Source: Selaginella moellendorffii
Taxonomy: Eukaryota; Plantae; Lycopodiophyta
DNA length: 64,000 nucleotides
Direction: 5' to 3'
Assembly (NCBI RefSeq): GCF_000143415.4
Contig: NW_003314348.1
Coordinates: 310,422 to 374,421 of the forward strand
A program made the translations under genes and the position numbers. Shown in pieces: positions 31,803 through 50,020 of this stretch. Each line of letters starts with the position of its first letter. Positions within the stretch are counted from its first letter, which is position 1. The notes beneath the pieces are model-generated. The model did no database searches. It was not told the origin of the DNA and saw only the letters and a list, made by a program, of their open reading frames with translations.

Positions 31803-33446
31803 CTATATGCTTCGATTCTGTAGCTGCAAAAGCCTGTAGGCCCTGCTCGCAGCGTAATTTCCCAGCTTGAGCTCCTGTTGTAGCTTGCAAGCACCAGCCA
31901 AAGTGCTCCATGCAACATCGTTGGGAAAGAATGGCATGTTGTTGATCAGTTCATCGGCCTGACTGAGCTCCCCCGACCTCGCAAGTATGTCCACCATGCA
32001 AGCATAATGCTCCGCCGCGGGAGTCAATCCAAACTGCGATACCATGCTTGTGAAGCACCACCAGCTGATCTTTACAAGCCCCGCATGGCTGCACGCGATG
32101 ATTACGCCCAGAAATGATACCTGGTTCGCCTTGAATCCTTGCACGACCATATCCAGCAGCAACTCCACACACTCGTGGACGCATCCAATGCGCGCAAACG
32201 CTGCGATGAGCGAGTTCCACGACAGCAAATCTCTGCCAGGCATCCTCTCGAACACCCGCTTGGAGGAGCTCGGCTGGCCGTTCAAAGCATACATGGCCAG
32301 CACGGAGTTCCACGACGCCACCTGAGAGTGCGGCATTTGCGTGAGGATCCTCACGGCGTCCTCGACGTAGCCGCTCTGGCCAAAGACCACAATTATCGAG
32401 TTCCACGACACGGAGCTTCGCGCGGGCATCGTGTCGAAAGTCAACTTCGCCTCCTCGACCCGGCACTGCTGACCATATATTCGAATGAGCACCGTCCATG
32501 AGACGACGTCCTTCTCGGGCATGGCATCAAAGATTCTCTTGGCCTGGCGGAGATGCCCGTTTTGGGCGTAAGCAGCAATCAAGGTGTTCCATGACACGGC
32601 ATTCCACTCGGGCATCCTGTCGAAAGTCCGCTGTGCTTGCTGCAAGTAGCCGGACTGCCCGTATGCGTCCACCATGGCTGTCCAGGAAATGATGTTCCTC
32701 TCGGGCATCCCCGCAAAGAGCCTCTTGGCCGCCTCCAGCTCGCCATTCAAGACGTAAGCCTGAAAGAGAGCGTTCCACGACGCGGTGTTGTGCTCCGGCA
32801 TCCTGTGGAACAAGCGCTCGGCCTGGCGGAGCTCCGAGTTCTCGCCATATCCCGAGATCATGGAATTCCACGAGACCAAGCTCAAGAAAGGCATCTTGAC
32901 AAACAGCCCCACAGCTTCATTTAAATGCCCGTTTTGGGCAAATGCTGCAACCATAGCGGACCATGCTACAAGATTTCTCTCCGGCATTTCGTCGAAAACC
33001 ATCTTTGCTTCTATCAAATAGTTGCTTTGTGCAAAAGCTACAAGCATGCTCGTCCACGACACGACGTTTCTCTCGGGCATGGCTTGGAAGAGTTTTCTCG
33101 CTTCCTCGACATGCCCGTTCCGGGCATATGCTTGGATCATGATGCTCCAGCTGAAAACGTTGGGGTCCCGGATGCTGGCAAAGATCCTCTGGGCCTCCTC
33201 GACGCTTCCGCAGTCGCCATACATCTGGACAAGGATATTTGCCACGAATCTATCGTCCCGGAACTCGCTGTCCAGAATGCGCGAGTGGAGAAGCCTTGCC
33301 TGCGTTAGATCACCCACCTCGCGCACCAGACGCTCGATCAAATCGCGACGCTCCTGCCGCCGCTGCTGGATTTGGGTTCCCAGTCGCTCTCGCGGCTCCG
33401 ATCCGTGTCGACACAGCGGATCGGCGCAAAGATTCATTCCATACAA
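31803..33446 (-). CDS. PLS-class pentatricopeptide repeat protein, ending within the E domain
   Basis: 547-aa ORF with repeated ..F..MPE.N.VSW units, ACSHAG, EHYACMVDILARSG; no E+/DYW. Confidence 0.9.
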   Translation of the reverse strand: MYGMNLCADPLCRHGSEPRERLGTQIQQRRQERRDLIERLVREVGDLTQARLLHSRILDSEFRDDRFVANILVQMYGDCGSVEEAQRIFASIRDPNVFSWSIMIQAYARNGHVEEARKLFQAMPERNVVSWTSMLVAFAQSNYLIEAKMVFDEMPERNLVAWSAMVAAFAQNGHLNEAVGLFVKMPFLSLVSWNSMISGYGENSELRQAERLFHRMPEHNTASWNALFQAYVLNGELEAAKRLFAGMPERNIISWTAMVDAYGQSGYLQQAQRTFDRMPEWNAVSWNTLIAAYAQNGHLRQAKRIFDAMPEKDVVSWTVLIRIYGQQCRVEEAKLTFDTMPARSSVSWNSIIVVFGQSGYVEDAVRILTQMPHSQVASWNSVLAMYALNGQPSSSKRVFERMPGRDLLSWNSLIAAFARIGCVHECVELLLDMVVQGFKANQVSFLGVIIACSHAGLVKISWWCFTSMVSQFGLTPAAEHYACMVDILARSGELSQADELINNMPFFPNDVAWSTLAGACKLQQELKLGNYAASRAYRLLQLQNRSI

Positions 33447-34526: not shown

Positions 34527-35944
34527 ATGATGCAGCAGCTCGATCAAAAGGACAAAGCCGTGGCTCGCGAGGAACACTGTGCCAAGAGCCACTCGCAAGC
34601 AAACAACAGCTCCAGCAATACGGAGGAGGAACAGGCACACAAGAGCATGAGCGTCAGCTCGCCCGAGAGCTCCTCGGCGGGGACGAATTCAGGCAAGAGC
34701 TGCGACAGCAGCAGCCGCAAGAACAGCAGCAGCAGCGCCGCCACCGCGGGCGGCGTCCGGCAGTACGTGCGATCCAAAATGCCGCGCCTCCGATGGACGC
34801 CGGACCTCCACCACTGCTTCGTCAATGCCGTGGAGCGGCTGGGCGGCCAGGACAGTGAGTATCTTGTTCGCGCTTGTTTGATCTTCTCATGGATCATCAA
34901 ACGGGTTTTTATATCATAGTACCATCTTCTTTCCTTTCAAGATCTTGATCACTTTTGCTTCGTTTGTGTTGCTCAGGAGCCACTCCCAAGCTGGTTCTAC
35001 AGCTCATGGATGTCAAAGGATTGACAATTGCGCATGTCAAGAGCCATTTGCAGGTTCCACTTCTTTTCCTGCATTCGTTTATTTTGGGAAAAACTGCAAT
35101 TTGGTTTCAACTTCGCAGATGTATCGGAGCATGAAGAATGATGAGAATCACGGCCAAGGTCAGTGCAAAACTTATTTTGTCAGTCAGACGCATTCCCCGA
35201 TCCAAAGTAAAAAAGCTTTGTGGTTTTCGCTCGTTTTTTCGTATTCTTTTTTCTGTAGCGAGTTCCGAGGCAGGCCAGGATCATCTGGCGTTGATTGACG
35301 ATCGGAGCTCCCTCGTCGGCACCGCCTTTGCATCTTCTCTACAGCAACACCTTGATCTTGGACACCATCACCCACACGAAAGCTTTGCAGCCTTCCAGCA
35401 ACAGGAACAGCAGCAGCAGCACTTCTTCTGCCGTCCTGTGCTTCAGCCACTCGCCAGGTATTTCAATCTCACTGGGATATCACCCAAGTCTGACGAGTGA
35501 TTTCCTGCTTTGCTCATCCGTGGAACCGTGCCTCTCGATCCAATCCTGAAGGCACCACCACCACCAACACCAGCAGGAGCATGGGTTTATGGTGGAGAGC
35601 TCGAGCTCGTCGGGCCTGCGAAGCCACAGGAGCCTGCCAAACGATCTCGTCCACCTCAACGACTACTGGCTGAATTTGCAGACGCACAAGCAGATCAGCC
35701 CCGGGAGCAGCAGCAGCAATTACAGCAGCCGATCCGAGTGGACTCAGAATCATCTCATGCAGATCGATCACCACCACCACCACCACCGAGCTGCGCAGCA
35801 GGCAGCGATTAACAACAACAGCAACGTAATTGACAACAACATCAACAACAGGCATCGAGTTTTCGAGGAGCTGAGGAAGCAGAGACTTGTTCTCGACTCC
35901 TCCTCGCACAGCACCCACGCAACGATGCAACTCCTGGTCAGTAC

Positions 35945-36003
<59 letters not shown>

Positions 36004-36290
36004 TCCGTGTGATTGGTTTTCATCGTTTCTCTTTTTGGAAACAGGACCGGATGAACAATCGAAGATCAAGCCCCGACTCTACTGACGATGACGACGATGA
36101 TGATGGCAGTAACTTATCACTGTCACTAACAAGTTCCCCCGCTGGCATGAAGAACAAGGCAAAGCGGCGAAACGGGAAATACATTCGCAGGGGCAGCAGC
36201 AGCACTAGTAGCGGGCAGCCGGATCAAAATCGCGGGGAGCCGGTCATAAGATTGGATCTCACGCTCTCCATCGCCCACAAATCACCGTGA
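34527..36290 (+). CDS. GARP/G2-like MYB (SHLQMYR type) transcription factor, multi-exon
   Basis: VRQYVRSKMPRLRWTPDLH..ATPKLVLQLM..LTIAHVKSHLQMYR across GT-AG introns; C-terminal LSLSL and LDLTL EAR-like motifs. Confidence 0.9.
35949..36003. repeat. (CT)n(CA)n compound microsatellite, intronic
   Basis: Direct sequence. Confidence 0.95.
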
Positions 36291-39583: not shown

Positions 39584-40886
39584 TCAAAACGGGACCAAAG
39601 AGACGCCTTTGCCATGATGCCAAGCCAAGCTCGTCTGCGTGAGAAAGGCTGCCAGCGACCACAAGGAGAAAATGCCCAGAAGTTGCAACGATGACAGGAG
39701 CATCTGTAGCGAGCTCGTAATCGCCGTGGTCTGCACTGATGCCTCCAGTGTTTTCATGGAAAATATAAGCCCCGCGACAAGCTGTGCTGCTCTGTTTAGC
39801 TGGTGAAGACGATAAACCTGGAATATCAAGCTTTACAAGCTGGCCTCTACGAAAAACTCATTGCCAAGCAAACCTGGAAAATCATCGGTACTAGAGGTCG
39901 AATCGATGGCTTGTCTTCGGCAAACTTCTCTCCGCAAAATTGCACCACCAGCCCCGACACATATGGAACTAGAGCAGCGATGGCCGCGGGGCCCGTATAC
40001 TTCCAGGCCACGAAGAAACTCGAAACAGCCAAGACCGTGGAGAGAGCGGTGCATACCGTGGCCGACACATTGTATCCCCAAGTGTAGGAAGCAGCAGCTA
40101 AAGCATCGCCTTTGGAACCGCGAACACGAACAGGTCCTCGAAACTTATGAGCAACGAAAAGGAATGCTGATACTCCGATGTAAAAGTAGGCTTCCGTGAA
40201 GAACAAAATGATAAAATCTGCATTCACGAGAGAGATTAAGTCGATCTCAATGGAGATGGAAAAAAGAAAAGCGAGACAGAAGAAAGATGGTGAGAAGTAC
40301 CTGTTACTACTGTATCGTCGAGAAGATATTCAAAGACGGTCCGAAAAACGTATGGCGGTAGCACGACCGAAGCAACCAGCACAAAAGGTCCAAGCAGCCA
40401 GAGAAGCGATCGTCGCTTCACTCCTGTGAGCAAACGATCTTCTCCAGCAGCTCCGCTATAGAACGAAACGAATCCAGTTTTGCCGCTGATATCTGCGTCC
40501 TCCAAAAACTCCAAGTCGATGTGATCGGGTTCTTGAGAAGCTGCTGCTACTTCTTCTCCAGCAGGGTTCTCTTGCGAGTCGAATTCTTGCGGGCTGTTGC
40601 TGCTCGTCACCTCGTCTTTCAGAGAGACTCCACGAGACAACCGGCATTTTGATCCACCTCGGAGTCGTTCCAGTCGCGAAGCTGGGGTGATCAATCGGGA
40701 AGAAACGTTTGGAGCAACGGCAGTGAGTCGACTCGAGAGGTTTGGAGTAGCGGCAATCCTTCCTTTTAGCTTGAGCGAGCTCCTGGACCCGGTCTTTAAT
40801 CGCGCTAGCTCGCTACTCCCGATAGCGTACCTGTTATACGCTGGTTGCGCCGGGAGCAAGAGCGCCGGGGCAGCCAATCCTGCCAT
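39584..40886 (-). CDS. Conserved multi-pass membrane protein with probable plastid transit peptide (similar to the Arabidopsis At5g63040 family as recalled), 3 exons
   Basis: KTGFVSFY, LLWLLGPFVLVAS..PP, DFIILFFTEA..Y, FQVYRLHQLNRAAQLV; S/R/A-rich N-terminus. Confidence 0.75.
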
Positions 40887-41156
40887 TACCACGACCGCGA
40901 CCACGATCGACGCCTACGCCACGTCCATTCCCTGCAAAATCTCGTGATTTCTAACGCCCTAGCATGGAACACCTTCTTACAGGGAATGCGCGCAACTCTC
41001 TCGCCAAGCCCTAACAACAATGTTCATGCCAGCCACGTGTCATAAGGTTCCAGCTTGGACGACACGTGTATCCAACGTGTCATGGCATTTTTGTAAACGC
41101 TGTCCTGAGATTCGGGCTTTTAGATCAAAGATTTTTTCTTGACAGCAACGGCGGCT

Positions 41157-41492
41157 GAATATTCGATGGGGACAGTGACGCGCGAATATTCGCGCTGGGG
41201 ACCACGCACGATGGATGAATATTCACCACCCATTACCAATGAGAATATACTCACTGAGAGCAAATAAATCGTGGCGCCATAGAAAACGATTATAGCCCAA
41301 ATCTGTGAACGAGAGTCGCACACAAAAACTATAGTCCCCAAACTAGAAAGGCGACAAAGCCTGGAGAAATACCGGCATGCCGTACAAAGATTCCACGGTC
41401 CGTACTGGGCCCGCATCATCACGAATATGCTTCTGCGCCGCGGCATATTCGGCGGGATAAGTATATGCTGCTCTTTTACGAAACGAATATTC
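41157..41492. promoter_or_regulatory. Cluster of 8 P1BS (GNATATNC, PHR1-binding) elements
   Basis: Sites at 41157, 41184, 41217, 41243, 41423, 41443, 41461, 41485. Confidence 0.8.
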
Positions 41493-41658
41493 GCTCGGCG
41501 ACACACAAAAAGAGGGCGGGGGAGCGCGGTTTGGTGATTTTTTGTTGATGCTTTGCGCAGCGGCTGTAGGATTTTTGATCAATTGCGCGGATGGGCGTCA
41601 CGGAGCTCCAGGCGAGGTGAGGCTCTAGGGGAGATCTTCCCGAAAATTCGATGCTATC

Positions 41659-42889
41659 ATGTCTGGCATTTGTGGGAATGATCTTTCGGCTTCATTGTCC
41701 CACAGCGTCAAGGCGCTGGTGAGATCCGGGGGTGAATTCAACCAGGACAAGGCGTGCTCCACATTCTACTACGTTCCATCGTCGGGCGAGGCATCGGCGC
41801 ATCTCTCCGCCTCCGGGCTTGGAAACGATCAAAAGCCGCGGTTGCGATGGACGCCGGAGCTGCATGATCAGTTTGTCAAGGCCGTGGCGCAGCTCGGTGG
41901 CCCCGAGAGTCCGTAGTTTTCTCTCTTCAGAGTTTTTACTTTGGTTTTTTACTAACCAAAAGAACGTTTGATTTCAGAAGCTACACCAAAGTCGGTCCTG
42001 AAGCTAATGGGCGTTCAAGGACTAACACTTTACCATCTCAAGAGCCATCTCCAGGTAAAAAAAATCTCGTTTTTCTGGAGGATTGGACGCAATTTTTCCT
42101 GTGATCGTAGAAGTATAGACTTGGAATGCAAATACCCCGACCCGAGACTAGCGGCGATGGTAAAAAAATCTCTTTTTCCCGCTTCTTGTCGTTGTTTCGA
42201 GCTCACAAGCAACAATTCATCAACAGGCAGGAGTAACTCCGAGGACAGCAGCAAACAACAAGAGTGAGCATTTAATTCATTGATCTTGGCCGATCTTGGA
42301 AAATCAAAACTTTGATGGTTTTCCACCAGGAGTTTGCCTCTCACGCAGATAATTGCGGTGCACGCGGAGGTCGAGAAGAAACTCCGGGAGCAGATGGAGG
42401 TAATGACTAAGTTCGTGGAGGATCCATTCTCATTTTGATTGGTGATTTTACACGATCCACGGACAGATCCAGCAGCAGCTACAGGCCCGGATCGACGAGC
42501 AATGCCAGCACCTGTACAAGCTGATGGAGAGCGCGAGCCCTCAGAAGAAATCGATCATGGCGGACCTGGAGGCCGCTCGAAAGCTCCAGCTCGACGGCAT
42601 CATGGAGCTGTCCAAGATGTACTCGGGGCTCCAGAGCGCGGTGGAGCAGCACGGCAAGCTGGATCAAGCGACGAGCAACAACACCGCGGGGATCAAGAGG
42701 CGCCCCAGCGACGATGATCCCCAACGCCAGCTCGAGGAGGAGCAAGAGAGGGTGACGAAGTCGCTAGTGCAGTGGAAGAAGGAGCCAGTGTGGGATGACG
42801 ACGAAGCGCAGCATGCATCAGGCTCCACTGCCGAGATCTCGACGGGGCTCAATCTCAGTAGCGGTCGCGGCTTAGACTTGAATGGCTAG
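41659..42889 (+). CDS. MYB-CC (PHR1-like) transcription factor with divergent coiled coil and C-terminal LDLN motif
   Basis: [65 protein letters not shown]; typical MYB-CC intron positions. Confidence 0.9.
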
Positions 42890-44463
42890 CTAAGATAGAG
42901 CTCCACGAAAAAAGGGTGAACAAGTAAAAGCCCTAAAAGCGAGAGGAAATGATTCGATTCTCGAGAGCAAAAGAAAAAGATTCCATTTGGTGCGGTTCCA
43001 CTGTCCCGGAAAGAAAGAAAAAAGATGCGGCAAAACTTTGTGAGATTCCTCTTGCTTATGTTAATTCCAGAGGATGAACTGTACGGATACGTTGATCTTT
43101 TTCTGCATGACAGTTACTGATTGCCGAAGGGAATTGACCTAAAGCCTGGATGGATTGAAGCGAATGCGACGAAGAGCCCATTCGTGCATTGCAATGACAC
43201 AATGTTCGTTTGCAAGATAAGGTGGGGAGGGCCCAATCCCTAATAAACCCCTGGACTGCATCTATATCTACACCAAGAGAGGGACAAGACGCGAGCAAAA
43301 AGGTGTATTTATACTGACAATTTCTTGTCAATAGATTACATTAGTCTGGACATTTGGTGATTTACAAAGTGGTGGTTTTGGAATCTCTTGCGAATTGTTT
43401 GAGCGTAATGATAATGTTGAACTTGCATGATTGATGACCTGTAGGCGCACCAGAGGAGAAGCATGGGAGAACCTTCTGCCAAGAATTGCGTGGTTTGCGA
43501 GATTATATATATCCATCTTCCAATCCATGTCTATATGAATGAAGCCATAAAGGTGGCAGCGATCCACCATATGTCTGGATGGATCGAGAAGGTGGCGTAC
43601 GAGGGTGAGAATCGTACTAGTGACAACGTTTTTAGGGTTATCGTCTATCGTGGCTTGTGTTTCTTGGTCTGGTTAACGAAAAAAGGGAAAAAAATGTTAA
43701 GATACATTTTGATATGTGGGAGGCTTTCCATCTCGCAAGCAACGTAATGCATTAAAGTTCAAAAGAGGAACTTAGCTTAATTGAAAAGCCACCGGCTGCG
43801 CCAGCCACGTGTCGGTGGGCACCAGTTTTTTTGTTAATAATTTTTTTCTTCGCCTTGTGTTCCGCCATAGCCATCGAGCTCGCTCCCTGCTTCGCGTCCC
43901 CGCATTTCACTTCGATTTCTCTCTCCAGCAGGCGGCGCATCAATCTCTACAGTGCAACGATCTGGATTTCGACCATTGAGCGTTCCATCGCAGGTCAAGG
44001 AGGGAATTCGCAGGAATTGGCGGGCATCTCCCCTTCCAGCAGGGGCGCCAGACTCTCGCAGGGGACGGTAGCAGCTTCAATTCTTGCGCTCCAAGGCTGG
44101 AATCTTGGGGCTAAGATCGCAAGAATTTCTAGATTACTGTAGCATTCTCGGAGCTTCCTCTTGGTTCTAGCGCCGTTCCCTCTTCGCTCTTTCTTCTTCT
44201 TCTTCTCCTTCCTCCTCCTTAATGTGTATCTCTGGAAAGCGAATTTCCAAGCGGTTAGGGTTCTAGCCTAGAGGATCGCGAACTCGCTCGCTCGCTCGCC
44301 TAGAAATTTTTCTGTTCCCTGGGATTTTTTTCTTCTTTTTTTCTCAATTTTTTCTCATTCGACAGGCGGTATACTATATCACAAAGATTATTAGTTGGCA
44401 AGGCCTTATCCAAATCTGTGATGTCCGTATCGCGCGTTTTGGGTTGTAGCGTCTACAGCCGAA

Positions 44464-45937
44464 ATGCTGTATGAGGCTCTCAAGCAATCCACGACAAAGA
44501 TGTCGCAACACCAAAGGCCGTCGCTTCCATCTCCTTCCCCGCATCATCACCAAGCGCTGTCCGATCCACAGAGAATTGCGAGCGGCTCTTCTCCCGGCGC
44601 TACGAGCTCTGGCGGCGGAGGAGGAGCAAGCAACAACGCCGTCTCGAATGCGGCGGCCGCCGCCGCTAAGCAGCGCCTCCGATGGACGCCGGACCTTCAC
44701 GAGCGATTCGTAGAGGCTGTTGGGCAGCTGGGAGGAGCCGACAGTAAGTTTCTCTTAGATCTCCGCTCCGAAACACTGTTGTGTGTTGCTTTCGGTCAGG
44801 AGCTACTCCCAAGGGTGTTCTTCGCGTAATGGGCGTGCAAGGACTCACAATCTATCATGTCAAGAGTCATTTACAGGTAGGGGGTGATTGGTTTAGCTCG
44901 TTTTTTCTATCCTGTCCTCTGCCAGTGATCATGATCTCTGGTGTCTCCGCAGAAGTACCGACTTGCGAAGTACATACCAGATCCGATGGGCGATGGTAAG
45001 TGTTCAACTAGTTAGATTTTCTGACCGGTCTGCTTCCTGTGCTTGAATGCATGGGAATGGCCCCGAGGGAATCCAGTTTGGAATTAAACTATGTCTGACA
45101 GGGAAATCGGACAAAAGGAGGCACCCGGATTTGCCGAGTCTCGGAGGATCGTAAGTTGGTGAATGGGTTTTTTCATGTAAACTTGCTACAACTCCCCCTC
45201 TCCTCTCAACAGTGTTCAGATCAACGAGGCATTGCGTATGCAAATGGAGGTACAAAAGAGACTTCAGGAGCAGCTCGAGGTAAGCTCTTTTCCGTGCTTT
45301 TATGATTTCTTCTCCTCCCGCGAGGACAGAGGGACACCGACTTAATATGCCCTGGATGGAAAAACCTGAAACGCAGGTGCAACGGCACCTGCAATTGCGA
45401 ATCGAAGCGCAAGGGAAGTACCTGCAGAAAATTATTGACGAGCAGAAGAAGATGAGTGGGGGTCTTGACAACCAGCCAGGTGCCAGTCCCGGATCGACGC
45501 AAGTTTTTAGCTCAGATATAACAGTCCAAGGCTCAGATCTCAAATACGAATTGACCGAGAGCGTACCAGGTCTGATGGATCCACCAGGAGGAGGGGGAGG
45601 TGGAGGTGGAGGAGGAGCTTTGCCAGCGATCACATCAGCGCTTTCGGCACTGGGATCAATGGCAGCTAACAACAGTTTGTCGCGAGAAAACTCGCCGGCG
45701 TCAGTCCCAAATCCTTTGGGAGCCAGTTACACTTTACTCAACAACAACAACAACAACAACAACAACATTAGGACCGATGACGCGGTAGTAGTATCACCGA
45801 GACACCAGGAATCAGTAGAAGAGTATCTCCATTCGAAATCTTTACAACAGCAGCAGCAACAGCAGTCTTACCTCCATTCGAGTTATTTGCAGTGTAACAC
45901 AGCAGGTATGCTTTTCAATCCTGTTTCCAGGAATTAA
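44464..45937 (+). CDS. MYB-CC (PHL7/PHL2-like) transcription factor
   Basis: [86 protein letters not shown]; 3' end may be further spliced. Confidence 0.9.
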
Positions 45938-46179
45938 GTTGGTTTCTGTTTTGGTGCAGGCAGGCTTCCATGACCACAAGACTGGCGAGAGTTTTCTGTA
46001 ATATGTAGGAGCTCTATAGCCGCCGCAGCAAACGACTTTGTCCACTTTGGTACGATCGTTTCTTGCCGCTTGTTGAAAGAATTGAGACTTTTGTAACCGC
46101 GGTCCTGCTGTATTTTTTTTTTTTTCTTCTAGACTTCTAGAATGGGAGAACGAGAAAAATATTATATCGGAGAGAAAGC

Positions 46180-48510
46180 CTACCAAAAGTCGGCGCAAGC
46201 GCACGCTCCATCTTGAAAGTGGTGAAAGCGATGAGCATCTCTCACAGTGATCGCCCTCTTGGCGATCCGGGACATGAACTTCGTGGCGGTGTGGCAGTCG
46301 GTGCACATCCGCAAGTTCTTCACCACGAAGAGAGGATCGCTCCTCCCGCGAGTGCTGATCATCCCAAACACCACCGCCAGCTTCTCGCTGTGGAAGCTCA
46401 GCGATTGCTCCTTCTCCTCGTCGTCGAAGTCGTGGAGTACGTTGCTCGTATCGGGTACGTATCCGGCCTCTCTCATCTTTGCATTGAAACTGTGGAGCTC
46501 GTCCAGGATCGCGCTGATTTCGGGGTGGTTTTTCCCTCCCGCCACGAACTCGTGAGCTCTACCTTTGATCGTGATGCTACTTAGACCCGCGGGCTTTCTT
46601 AAACGCCTGGCGTCCATAGCCTTCCTCACGGAAATCCCATCGCCGTGCTTACCAGCGGCATCGTAGAGCCTTGAGAGTAGCACGTACGGAGAGGAGCACA
46701 CCGGGTTGGCATTTGTGGCCCGGTGGGCGAGCCTGGCGCCACGGCCCACGTCTCCGTACGTACGGCAGCCCGCGAGGAGGGACTTCCACGCGGTGTATTC
46801 CGGCTGGAATGGCATGGCGTCCAGGAGATCCTCGCCGTCCATCAGTTGGCCCGTTCTGGCCAGAAGATCCACCATGCATGTGTAGTGGGCCGCGTGTGGA
46901 GCGAGCGCGAAATCTCCGACCAGCGAGAGGAAGTAGCGGTGCCCGAGATCGAGGAGGCCGGCGTGGCTGCAGGCGCTGACGATCGAGACGAATGTGACGG
47001 CGTCGGGATGGATCCCGGAGAGAATCGCGCGCTGGAAGAGATCGGCAGCTTCGCTGGCGCGGCCGCTCTGGGCGTAGGCGCCCAGCATCGCGTTGAGGAG
47101 GATCGCGTCGCAGAAGGCCATGGCGTCGAAGAGCGATCGCGCTTCGTCCAGGCGGCCGCATTTGGCGTAGAAGTTCACGAGCGCGGTGGCGAGGCTGGCC
47201 TCGACGAAGACGCTCTGGCTTGCAAGGAGGAGCTCTTCGTGGAGAAGTTTTCCCTCGCGCAGCGCCGTGAGGATCGTGCACGCATCCAGCGCGCTCACGA
47301 AGCTGATCCCGTCGGGGTGGATCCCTTCCAGATCCATGCCCGCGAAGATCCCCAGCGCCTGGCGAGCGTGGCCGTTCTGGGAGAACGCCGCCAGGAGCGC
47401 GTTCCAGGAGATCACGTCGCGCAGATCCCCGGCGCTGTCGAAGAGATCCTTGGCGCGAGCAATCTCGCCGTGGAGGCCATAGGCCGCGATCATCGCATTC
47501 ACCGCTGCCGCGTCCTTGATCGGGATCGCCTCGAACAGATCCCGGGCCTCTTGCAAGAAGCCGCTGTGGGCGAAGGCGGTGACGATCGCTGTCCAGATCA
47601 CTACGTCCGTGAGCGGCATCCGCTTGAAGAGATCCCACGCCCGGTGGAGATCGCCGCTGTGGACGCAGCCCTGGATCATCGCGATCCAGGATACCATGTC
47701 CCGGAAGGGCAGCGCCTGGAAGAGCTCAAGCGCGTCGGGGAGGCGATGGTTGCGACCCATCCCCGAGATCAAGGCGTTCCAGCACACCTCGTTCCACTGC
47801 GGCATCAAACCAAAGAGCTCGGTTGCGTTGTCAAGATGCCCGGCTTGGGCATATCCTGCAACCATGGTATTCCACGTCACCACGTTTCGTACGGGCGCCC
47901 GGTCAAAGATCTCTCGCGCGTGGGTACACAGGCATCTCTGTGTGTAACCCGCGATTAGCACATTCCACGTCGCTGCGTCGCGGATTTTCATGGTATTGAA
48001 GAGATTCCTTGCCTTGGCCAAGTTCCCCTGGCGGGCAAATGCTGAGATCAAGGTGTTATACGACACGGTGTTCTTGTACGGCATCTCGTCAAAGAAAAGC
48101 TTTGCATCTCGAAAGCTTCCATAGCGGGCGTAGGCAGAGAGCATCCCATTCCACGAGACGACGTCCTTGTTTGGCGTCCAATCGAAAGTTCTTGCTGCGA
48201 GAGCCAGATGCCCGTTCTGGGCATATGCTGCGACCATGACATTGTGAGAGAATGCGGTCGGGTTCCGGATAGAATCGAAGCAGGCGACGGCGTCGGCCAC
48301 GCAGCCGCATCGTCCGTACATCTGCACGAGTAATGTGCCCAGCAGGGTGTGGCGATCCGAGCCAAGCCGCCGGAGTTCCGAGTGGATGCGCTTGCCATTG
48401 GCGAGATCCCTGGACAGGCAGCACTGGCGAAGCGGCGACGCATATATCGATTCATCGCGGTGGCTGGATTCCTTGCAGAAAGATCGCCGAGCGATGTCCC
48501 GGCATTTCAT
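46180..48510 (-). CDS. PLS-E-DYW PPR RNA-editing factor (C-terminus DFW)
   Basis: 776-aa ORF; PG-box-like KPAGLS; HSEKLA; KNLRMCTDCH; RFHHF..G.CACADFW. Confidence 0.95.
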   Translation of the reverse strand: MKCRDIARRSFCKESSHRDESIYASPLRQCCLSRDLANGKRIHSELRRLGSDRHTLLGTLLVQMYGRCGCVADAVACFDSIRNPTAFSHNVMVAAYAQNGHLALAARTFDWTPNKDVVSWNGMLSAYARYGSFRDAKLFFDEMPYKNTVSYNTLISAFARQGNLAKARNLFNTMKIRDAATWNVLIAGYTQRCLCTHAREIFDRAPVRNVVTWNTMVAGYAQAGHLDNATELFGLMPQWNEVCWNALISGMGRNHRLPDALELFQALPFRDMVSWIAMIQGCVHSGDLHRAWDLFKRMPLTDVVIWTAIVTAFAHSGFLQEARDLFEAIPIKDAAAVNAMIAAYGLHGEIARAKDLFDSAGDLRDVISWNALLAAFSQNGHARQALGIFAGMDLEGIHPDGISFVSALDACTILTALREGKLLHEELLLASQSVFVEASLATALVNFYAKCGRLDEARSLFDAMAFCDAILLNAMLGAYAQSGRASEAADLFQRAILSGIHPDAVTFVSIVSACSHAGLLDLGHRYFLSLVGDFALAPHAAHYTCMVDLLARTGQLMDGEDLLDAMPFQPEYTAWKSLLAGCRTYGDVGRGARLAHRATNANPVCSSPYVLLSRLYDAAGKHGDGISVRKAMDARRLRKPAGLSSITIKGRAHEFVAGGKNHPEISAILDELHSFNAKMREAGYVPDTSNVLHDFDDEEKEQSLSFHSEKLAVVFGMISTRGRSDPLFVVKNLRMCTDCHTATKFMSRIAKRAITVRDAHRFHHFQDGACACADFW

Positions 48511-48645: not shown

Positions 48646-49416
48646 ATGGCGATGGCCACTACTACGGCTGGGGCGATGGCTTGCACGATGCCCCAAGCGC
48701 GGCATTACAATGCCGCTGGAATTTGTGGTAGAGTAGCCGCTCCTAGGGCTTGTCCACGGCCGATTTCGCGATCTCACGCTCTCGGAAGCACCAGCGCTGG
48801 AGGATTTCGGCCTCTCAGAGCAGTTGCGACTGCGGATCCAGCGGCTTCTTCTTCCCCATCGTCGGCAGTGCAACAGGTTCGTGATTTCTAGATTGATGGA
48901 AGAAAGCAAACACGAAATTGTGATTCCAGAAGAAGCAGTATCACTTCTTGCTGGCCAACGCGAAGTTCATGCTGGACGAGGAGGAGCATTTGCAGGAGCT
49001 CTTGAGAGAGCGCCTCCGGAACTACGACGAGCGTAACAAGGAGCAAGATTTCTGGCTGGTGATAGAGCCCAAGTTCGTGGAGAAATTCCCAGAGATGTCG
49101 GCTCGGCTCAACCGGCCCGCTGTGGCTCTCGTCTCCACTGACCCCGTCTGGATCACGTAAGTTCTTCTACGCTAGTTTTTCTTTCGCTCTCCTCTCTAAT
49201 CAATCGATCTTCGTGGATTGGATTGGATTCATGGAGCACAGATTCATGAAGCTCAGGATCGATCGCGTCTTGAAGGGCGTGATCGAGGCGGAAAGCTTGT
49301 CGGAAGTGGCGGAATCGAATCCAATCGACGTCCAGTTCGATCGGCCGGACAAATGGACAGCGCCATATCCAAAGTATGAGACTGGATGGTGGACTCCATT
49401 TTTGCCCCCAAAGTAA
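48646..49416 (+). CDS. YCF54: Ycf54 / LCAA, Mg-protoporphyrin monomethyl ester cyclase auxiliary protein, 3 exons
   Basis: ANAKFMLDEEEH.QELLRER..DFWLVIEPKF..RPAVALVSTD..WITFMKLR; WTAPYPKYE.GWW; transit peptide. Confidence 0.93.
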
Positions 49417-50020
49417 ATGCGGGAGAATATTCCGCGAACGTTTTCACTCGCATATGCTCCAGAATCTTGCCTTGTAGCATATACTCTAGAATCTTGCGAC
49501 ACGTGTATCAATGACATTGCAACGTTTAGGCTAAATATCCACAAAGCAATTTGGGCGGGGCGATTTTTCCAGTTCGCGCGCGAGCGCGGCAAGCGATTTG
49601 TCGGAATCGAACCCTGATTTTCAGTTTGTCTTTCTTGCTGGGGCGGCGCTCGTGGTTCCTCGCGATTGATCGATCCATCCATCGTCCATCGGCCACCAGG
49701 TTAGTTTTTTAGGTCTTCCATCCATCTGCGCCATCTTCTTGCACAGTGGAATCAAAAGGATTTCCTCTCTTTTCTTTCCTTTCTTCCTTTTTTTCTCGGT
49801 CTCTTGGGATGATTAGGACAGGGTTTTACTTTTGACCGTGATAGCATTTTCTTTTGTGGGTCGATCCATCCGTTCTACGGCACTGTAAAGTCATTTAGTC
49901 AGAAGAGAGCTAAAAAATCGTTTTTTTTTTGTTCTTTGCTAGGCTGCATTCGATCTATAGCACTGTTTAGTCAGAAGAGAGCTATAAAATTTGTTCTTTG
50001 TTAGGCAGAAGGAGAGAAGT

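Follow-up and report, generated by a model that had tools for sequence, protein, structure and literature searches.

Eight P1BS sites within 336 bp form a dense candidate phosphate-responsive promoter beside an MYB-CC gene of Selaginella moellendorffii

The short intergenic region between two divergent genes of Selaginella moellendorffii (GCA_000143415.2, scaffold GL377652.1) carries eight P1BS sites within 336 bp, each an exact match to the consensus GNATATNC, which is an imperfect palindrome (PMC11082045, PMC6947268). The array is a compact (~340 bp), unusually dense candidate for a phosphate-responsive promoter and is directly testable with reporters. With a probability of roughly 55%, it is a phosphate-starvation-responsive homotypic cluster that is read by dimers of MYB-CC (PHR/PHL-type) factors in a short bidirectional promoter. 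It would then drive the adjoining MYB-CC gene (gene 1) as a second-tier regulator, with possible self-binding, and perhaps also the divergent membrane-protein gene LOC9662686 through its distal group of sites. Two tandem MYB-CC genes, gene 1 and gene 2, adjoin the array on its right side. All coordinates are those of the window, which is the whole 64-kb stretch of DNA that was analysed, and the main features are collected in Table 1.

Table 1. Features of the P1BS array and its flanking genes, in window coordinates.
Feature	Position	Strand	Remarks
Divergent intergenic region holding the array	40887..41590		704 bp; single-copy in the window
G-box/ABRE-like trio	41033..41081		CACGTG at 41034 and 41063; ACGTGTC or its complement (GACACGT) at 41035, 41061, and 41075
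P1BS site GAATATTC	41157, 41184, 41217, 41485		exact matches to GNATATNC
P1BS site GAATATAC	41243		
P1BS site GAATATGC	41423		
P1BS site GCATATTC	41443		
P1BS site GTATATGC	41461		
Distal group, four P1BS (GAATATTC x3, GAATATAC)	41157..41250		271-357 bp from ATG 40886; 341-427 bp from ATG 41591
Proximal group, four P1BS (GAATATGC, GCATATTC, GTATATGC, GAATATTC)	41423..41492		99-161 bp upstream of annotated ATG 41591 (gene 1)
LOC9662686 (P0001, 387 aa)	39584..40886, ATG 40886	-	uncharacterised membrane protein
Gene 1, divergent MYB-CC	41591..42889	+	exons read by hand from the sequence and reading frames
Gene 1 last exon (140 aa)	42467-42889	+	without detectable relatives; ends ...GLNLSSGRGLDLNG, a weak EAR-like motif
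Gene 2, canonical MYB-CC (probable separate gene)	44464..45937	+	Myb and LHEQLE-type coiled coil (here QEQLE)
Fused GenBank model	41591-46001 (L001 12510-16920; L002 4908-9307)		

The original prediction held that eight P1BS sites occur in this span in two groups of four, and all eight were recovered with the predicted positions and sequences. The grouping is reflected in the start-to-start spacings, which are 27, 33, and 26 bp in the distal group and 20, 18, and 24 bp in the proximal group, with 180 bp between the two. A 16-bp palindrome had also been reported and is present as GCGCGAATATTCGCGC at 41180-41195, with the second site of the distal group at its centre. The chance expectation, put beforehand at about 0.1 sites in the span, was calculated as 0.082 per 336 bp at the local base composition. 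Across the 64-kb window, 22 P1BS sites were counted against 11.1 expected, and none of 100 shuffles reached 22. The Poisson probability of at least eight sites is ~2e-14 per span when the rest of the window sets the background rate. A chance origin of the array is rejected, since eight sites stand against ~0.08 expected and a simulated maximum of 3, which was the largest P1BS count in any 336-bp span of 300 first-order Markov simulations of 64 kb.

The flanking sequences are dissimilar among the eight sites, and because the flanks are unrelated the array is not a tandem repeat. A BLAST comparison of the 500-bp array segment with the window matched only the segment itself and its internal palindromes, and no Rfam family was found anywhere in the 64-kb window. 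The unrelated flanks, the lack of a second copy in the window, and the lack of an Rfam family together reject an origin from a tandem repeat or a transposon. Within the window and the allele, the array segment is not a multi-copy repeat.

The sites are also distinguished by their completeness. The intergenic region contains 11 GAATAT half-sites, every one of them part of a full GNATATNC palindrome, whereas only 6 of the 36 half-sites in the remainder of the window are (Fisher p = 7e-7). Because every half-site sits in a complete palindrome, the unit that has been retained is the 8-bp palindrome and not the half-site. This pattern points to dimeric GARP factors as the candidate readers. Monomeric GARP readers (KANADI, ARR-B type) are unlikely to be the main explanation, since all half-sites are embedded in full palindromes.

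A second haplotype of the locus was found through the protein cluster of LOC9662686. It carries LOC9643701 (P0006) on scaffold GL377568.1 (L002) and has the same gene order. The intergenic region is ~98% identical between the haplotypes, and all eight array sites are intact in GL377568.1. The 336-bp span contains six substitutions (1.8 per 100 bp, where the regional mean is 1.4), all of which fall in the spacers and none in the 64 bp of sites. Six substitutions would miss 64 of 336 bp with a probability of ~0.28, and the pattern is compatible with constraint but proves nothing. Across 19.5 kb of aligned sequence, two of the six other P1BS sites of the first haplotype are absent in the second, one of them from a small cluster at 49425. 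Retention of 8/8 sites in the array against 4/6 elsewhere is not significant (p ~0.17). The agreement of the haplotypes says little, because 98% identity leaves the comparison underpowered.

Among the coding regions compared, the highest haplotype divergence was found in a single-exon PPR-DYW gene (776 aa, 46180-48510, minus strand), with 2.0 substitutions per 100 bp; the MYB-CC genes and the membrane-protein gene have 0.5-0.9.

The cluster could be a lineage-specific, recent, or neutral feature without a specific regulatory role, for example what is left of a low-copy element, or a motif that is general in the promoters of this species and has nothing to do with phosphate. Its conservation is known only in the 98%-identical allele, and the C-terminal half of gene 1 has no relatives, which under this explanation would indicate that the locus is evolutionarily young or fast-evolving. 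Nevertheless, we judge such an origin very unlikely. Chance is excluded, the flanks of the sites are unrelated, the window has no second copy of the segment, and there is evident selection for the complete 8-mer over the half-site. In addition, the array and the small cluster at 49425 contain 11 of the 22 P1BS sites of the window, and outside these two clusters P1BS occurs at its chance number (11 sites against 11.1 expected).

PHR1-type MYB-CC factors bind GNATATNC, and NIGT1/HHO factors bind the palindrome GAATATTC and also GAATC (reviewed in PMC11082045). NIGT1 and PHR1 have GAATATTC-type sites in common in Arabidopsis (PMC11082045). Four of the eight array sites are GAATATTC, so they are compatible with both the PHR1 and the NIGT1 classes, whereas the other four (GAATATAC, GAATATGC, GCATATTC, and GTATATGC) fit the degenerate P1BS and not the published NIGT1 palindrome. 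Since half of the sites are also the published NIGT1/HHO palindrome, MYB-CC factors need not be the sole readers.

The array could accordingly serve chiefly as a landing pad for NIGT1/HHO GARP repressors, or be shared between them and the PHRs, and it would then link nitrate status to the repression of gene 1. The four exact copies of a palindrome bound by NIGT1 dimers are consistent with this role, as are the shared NIGT1 and PHR1 sites of Arabidopsis and the existence of NIGT1-like proteins in S. moellendorffii (PMC11082045). However, the remaining four sites are not GAATATTC, and the second recognition mode is not enriched, with GAATC/GATTC occurring twice against 1.5 expected. No NIGT1-type gene was identified in the 64-kb window. 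Taken together, either form of this explanation is quite unlikely.

Other GARP recognition sequences gave little signal. Readers of the LUX or evening-element type were considered and set aside, as there was no clear enrichment of the LUX site (1 vs 0.43 expected) or the evening-element core (0 vs 0.11). The ARR-B core occurs five times against 1.8 expected and is not clearly enriched. On the basis of the sites, MYB-CC factors are the best candidates for reading the array, and NIGT1-type repressors may use it as well.

The original prediction placed the array in the promoter of a PHR-like gene, and both the gene and the position were confirmed. An MYB-CC gene begins just past the array (ATG 41591 or 41659), and the array lies 99-427 bp before the annotated ATG 41591 of this PHR-type gene and 271-599 bp from ATG 40886. 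Some of the P1BS sites may fall in the 5' UTR. The exons of gene 1 are 41659-41908 (or 41591-41616 plus 41706-41908), 41978-42054, 42111-42159, 42202-42232, 42330-42399, and 42467-42889. All introns are GT-AG, the frame is unbroken up to the stop at 42887-42889, and the product is 299 or 292 aa long.

The exons of gene 1 and gene 2 were queried singly. The Myb domain of gene 1 is a GARP-type single repeat with a SHLQKYR recognition helix, which the exons encode as ...RLRWTPELHDQFVKAVAQLGGPE / ATPKSVLKLMGVQGLTLYHLKSHLQ / KYRLG. The part encoded by exon 1 matched Pfam Myb with E 7e-5 and 23.3 bits, just below the cut-off of 24.4, and the score falls under the cut-off because an intron splits the domain. 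The part encoded by exon 2 (ATPKSVLKLMGVQGLTLYHLKSHLQ) is identical at 19 of 25 positions to the MYB domain in the structure of AtPHR1 with P1BS DNA (6J4R). In the PDB ranking for this exon, AtPHR1 and OsPHR2 chains come first, followed by LUX and ARR1/ARR10. The Myb domain of gene 1 is PHR-type and should recognise the P1BS motif.

The remainder of the gene 1 protein is less typical. Its coiled coil (...EVEKKLREQME / IQQQLQARIDEQCQHLYKLM) retains the position and the heptad-like pattern but is divergent in sequence. It reached only E 0.026 and 14.7 bits against Pfam PF14379 (LHEQLE), for which the cut-off is 29.1, and neither half matched any PDB chain. Dimerisation of the gene 1 product, and hence its own binding to P1BS, is not assured because the coiled coil is divergent. 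Residues K325, H328, and R335 of AtPHR1, known as the KHR surface motif, are needed for SPX binding (Ried et al., PMC7810988). When aligned by position to the AtPHR1 CC chain, gene 1 has K, R, and Q at these positions, so the motif is not intact, and gene 2 has K, Q, and R. No firm conclusion on SPX binding is drawn, because gene 1 and gene 2 each depart at one KHR position. The last exon of gene 1 found no relatives by word-index search, in the Atlas, or in the PDB. HMMER against 1.84 billion representatives returned three hits for it, all unrelated (HA-repeat, TPR, and other).

It is conceivable, although we regard it as a long shot, that the activity of gene 1 is set transcriptionally through the eight-site array instead of through the SPX/inositol-pyrophosphate clamp, and that gene 1 could be a phosphate-starvation-induced competitor or repressor at P1BS, acting as a negative-feedback brake. 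This idea derives from the K-R-Q in place of K-H-R, the divergent coiled coil, and the orphan C-terminus ending in LNLSS...GLDLNG (weakly EAR-like). Such a brake, if real, would have no described counterpart in the PHR family.

Gene 2 is the canonical member of the pair. Its coiled coil matched Pfam PF14379 above the cut-off (E 2.2e-9, 37.3 bits), its Myb exon gave E 0.0011, and both halves of the coiled coil align to AtPHR1 6TO5/6TOC. No GNATATNC occurs in the 1.57 kb upstream of gene 2. GenBank merges gene 1 and gene 2 into one model starting from ATG 41591, with 692 aa here and 793 aa in the other haplotype. This fused model probably represents two separate genes, because gene 1 has its own in-frame stop and the 1.57-kb spacer between the two differs more between the haplotypes than any other stretch of the locus (2.3 differences per 100 bp).

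On the other side of the array, a divergent plastid membrane gene had been proposed at 40886. The gene itself, about five hydrophobic segments, and a transit-peptide-like N-terminus were all found, whereas the plastid location is a step that we infer. The N-terminus of LOC9662686 is rich in Ala, Ser, and Arg, with one acidic residue in 60. The protein has no Pfam family, and its look-alikes in the Atlas are uncharacterised Streptophyta membrane-protein clusters only. A plastid membrane protein is a fair guess for LOC9662686. The G-box/ABRE-like trio lies within 50 bp, 150-190 bp upstream of ATG 40886, and contains the palindrome ACACGTGT at 41062. All of its motifs are identical in the other haplotype.

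The array might act mainly on LOC9662686, or it might be a bidirectional phosphate-responsive promoter that serves both genes equally, and in either case the MYB-CC gene would not be a specially fed-back target. The arrangement permits this, as the intergenic region measures only 704 bp, the genes are divergent, and the distal four sites are 271-357 bp from ATG 40886. The protein resembles a plastid membrane protein, and genes for the remodelling of plastid membranes are well-known targets of phosphate starvation. In contrast, the proximal four sites are far nearer to gene 1 (99-161 bp) than to LOC9662686 (537-599 bp), and the membrane gene has its own G-box/ABRE-like cluster nearer to its ATG. 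The absence of a Pfam family and the purely uncharacterised relatives of the protein also count against this explanation, which we consider unlikely.

Under the favoured reading, in which MYB-CC dimers use the array to control gene 1, SPX proteins would keep PHR-type factors off DNA at high cellular phosphate. As phosphate falls, PHR-type factors would occupy the array, and the candidates for this step include the product of gene 2, a gene whose own upstream region lacks P1BS. The occupied array would switch on gene 1, whose Myb domain should read the same motif, and the gene 1 protein, once made, may also bind its own promoter. Gene 1 would thus be a transcriptionally controlled second-tier regulator, as is the case for rice OsPHR4. 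The most likely target of the proximal four sites is gene 1, and the distal four sites together with the G-box trio may also serve the membrane-protein gene. The occupancy of the sites, their phosphate dependence, the direction of action, and the loop are what we infer from the locus, and feedback on gene 1 is proposed by analogy with OsPHR4.

OsPHR4 is induced by phosphate starvation, and OsPHR1/2/3 bind P1BS elements in its promoter, to which OsPHR4 itself also binds (Ruan et al. 2017, summarised in the review PMC6947268). The control of an MYB-CC gene through P1BS therefore has a known precedent. Like OsPHR4, gene 1 is an MYB-CC family member with P1BS in its own promoter, and it sits beside the canonical MYB-CC gene 2 that lacks P1BS. 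Compared with the rice promoter, the Selaginella array is much denser, with eight sites in 336 bp. Gene 1 also differs from OsPHR4 in being a lycophyte-specific divergent MYB-CC with an orphan C-terminus and not an OsPHR4 orthologue.

The promoters of IPS1/At4, SPX1, PHT1, and miR399 contain P1BS pairs or clusters that are bound by AtPHR1/PHL1, and classic phosphate-starvation promoters usually have one to four P1BS sites. The Selaginella locus resembles them in the multiple copies of GNATATNC, the short spacings, and the position in the proximal promoter or 5' UTR. It differs from them in that the flanking genes encode a transcription factor and an uncharacterised membrane protein, neither of which is a known phosphate-starvation marker. 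A further parallel is found in the NIGT1 promoters of Arabidopsis, where PHR1 as activator and NIGT1 as repressor share sites, giving auto- and cross-regulation (Maeda et al. 2018, via PMC11082045). As in those promoters, GAATATTC sites stand ahead of a GARP transcription-factor gene, but the gene here is an MYB-CC and not NIGT1-type, and half of the sites are not GAATATTC.

A search of a paper library found no paper on P1BS or on phosphate-starvation transcriptomes in Selaginella. If the favoured reading is true, the PHR-family wiring, in which a constitutive, sensor-controlled factor switches on a second MYB-CC through P1BS, would be present in both a lycophyte and rice, and it would be either old or have evolved repeatedly. 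The locus alone would add a case to a known scheme and opens no new one.

Several further P1BS and GARP features were observed in the window. The second, smaller P1BS cluster comprises sites at 49425, 49450, and 49477 (GAATATTC, GCATATGC, and GCATATAC) within 60 bp (49425-49484). The cluster starts 9 bp past the Ycf54 coding region (48646-49416), and an unannotated ORF of 173 aa (ATG 50021, no Pfam family) follows ~540 bp downstream of it. The third site of this cluster is lost in the other haplotype (GCTTATAC). The palindrome ACACGTGT occurs only twice in the 64 kb, at 41062 and 49499, each time within the same 13-mer CGACACGTGTATC. This 13-mer is found only at 41060-41072 and 49497-49509, and each copy lies less than 100 bp from a P1BS cluster. 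As a post hoc observation, CGACACGTGTATC near the P1BS clusters may represent a composite module of P1BS and G-box. A third GARP-type Myb gene lies at 34527-36290 (plus strand, annotated with 424 aa). Its recognition helix is of the SHLQMYR type, and its C-terminus carries LDLTLS, an EAR-like motif. The gene lacks a coiled coil and is not an MYB-CC, and a lone P1BS is located 1.4 kb upstream of it at 33124.
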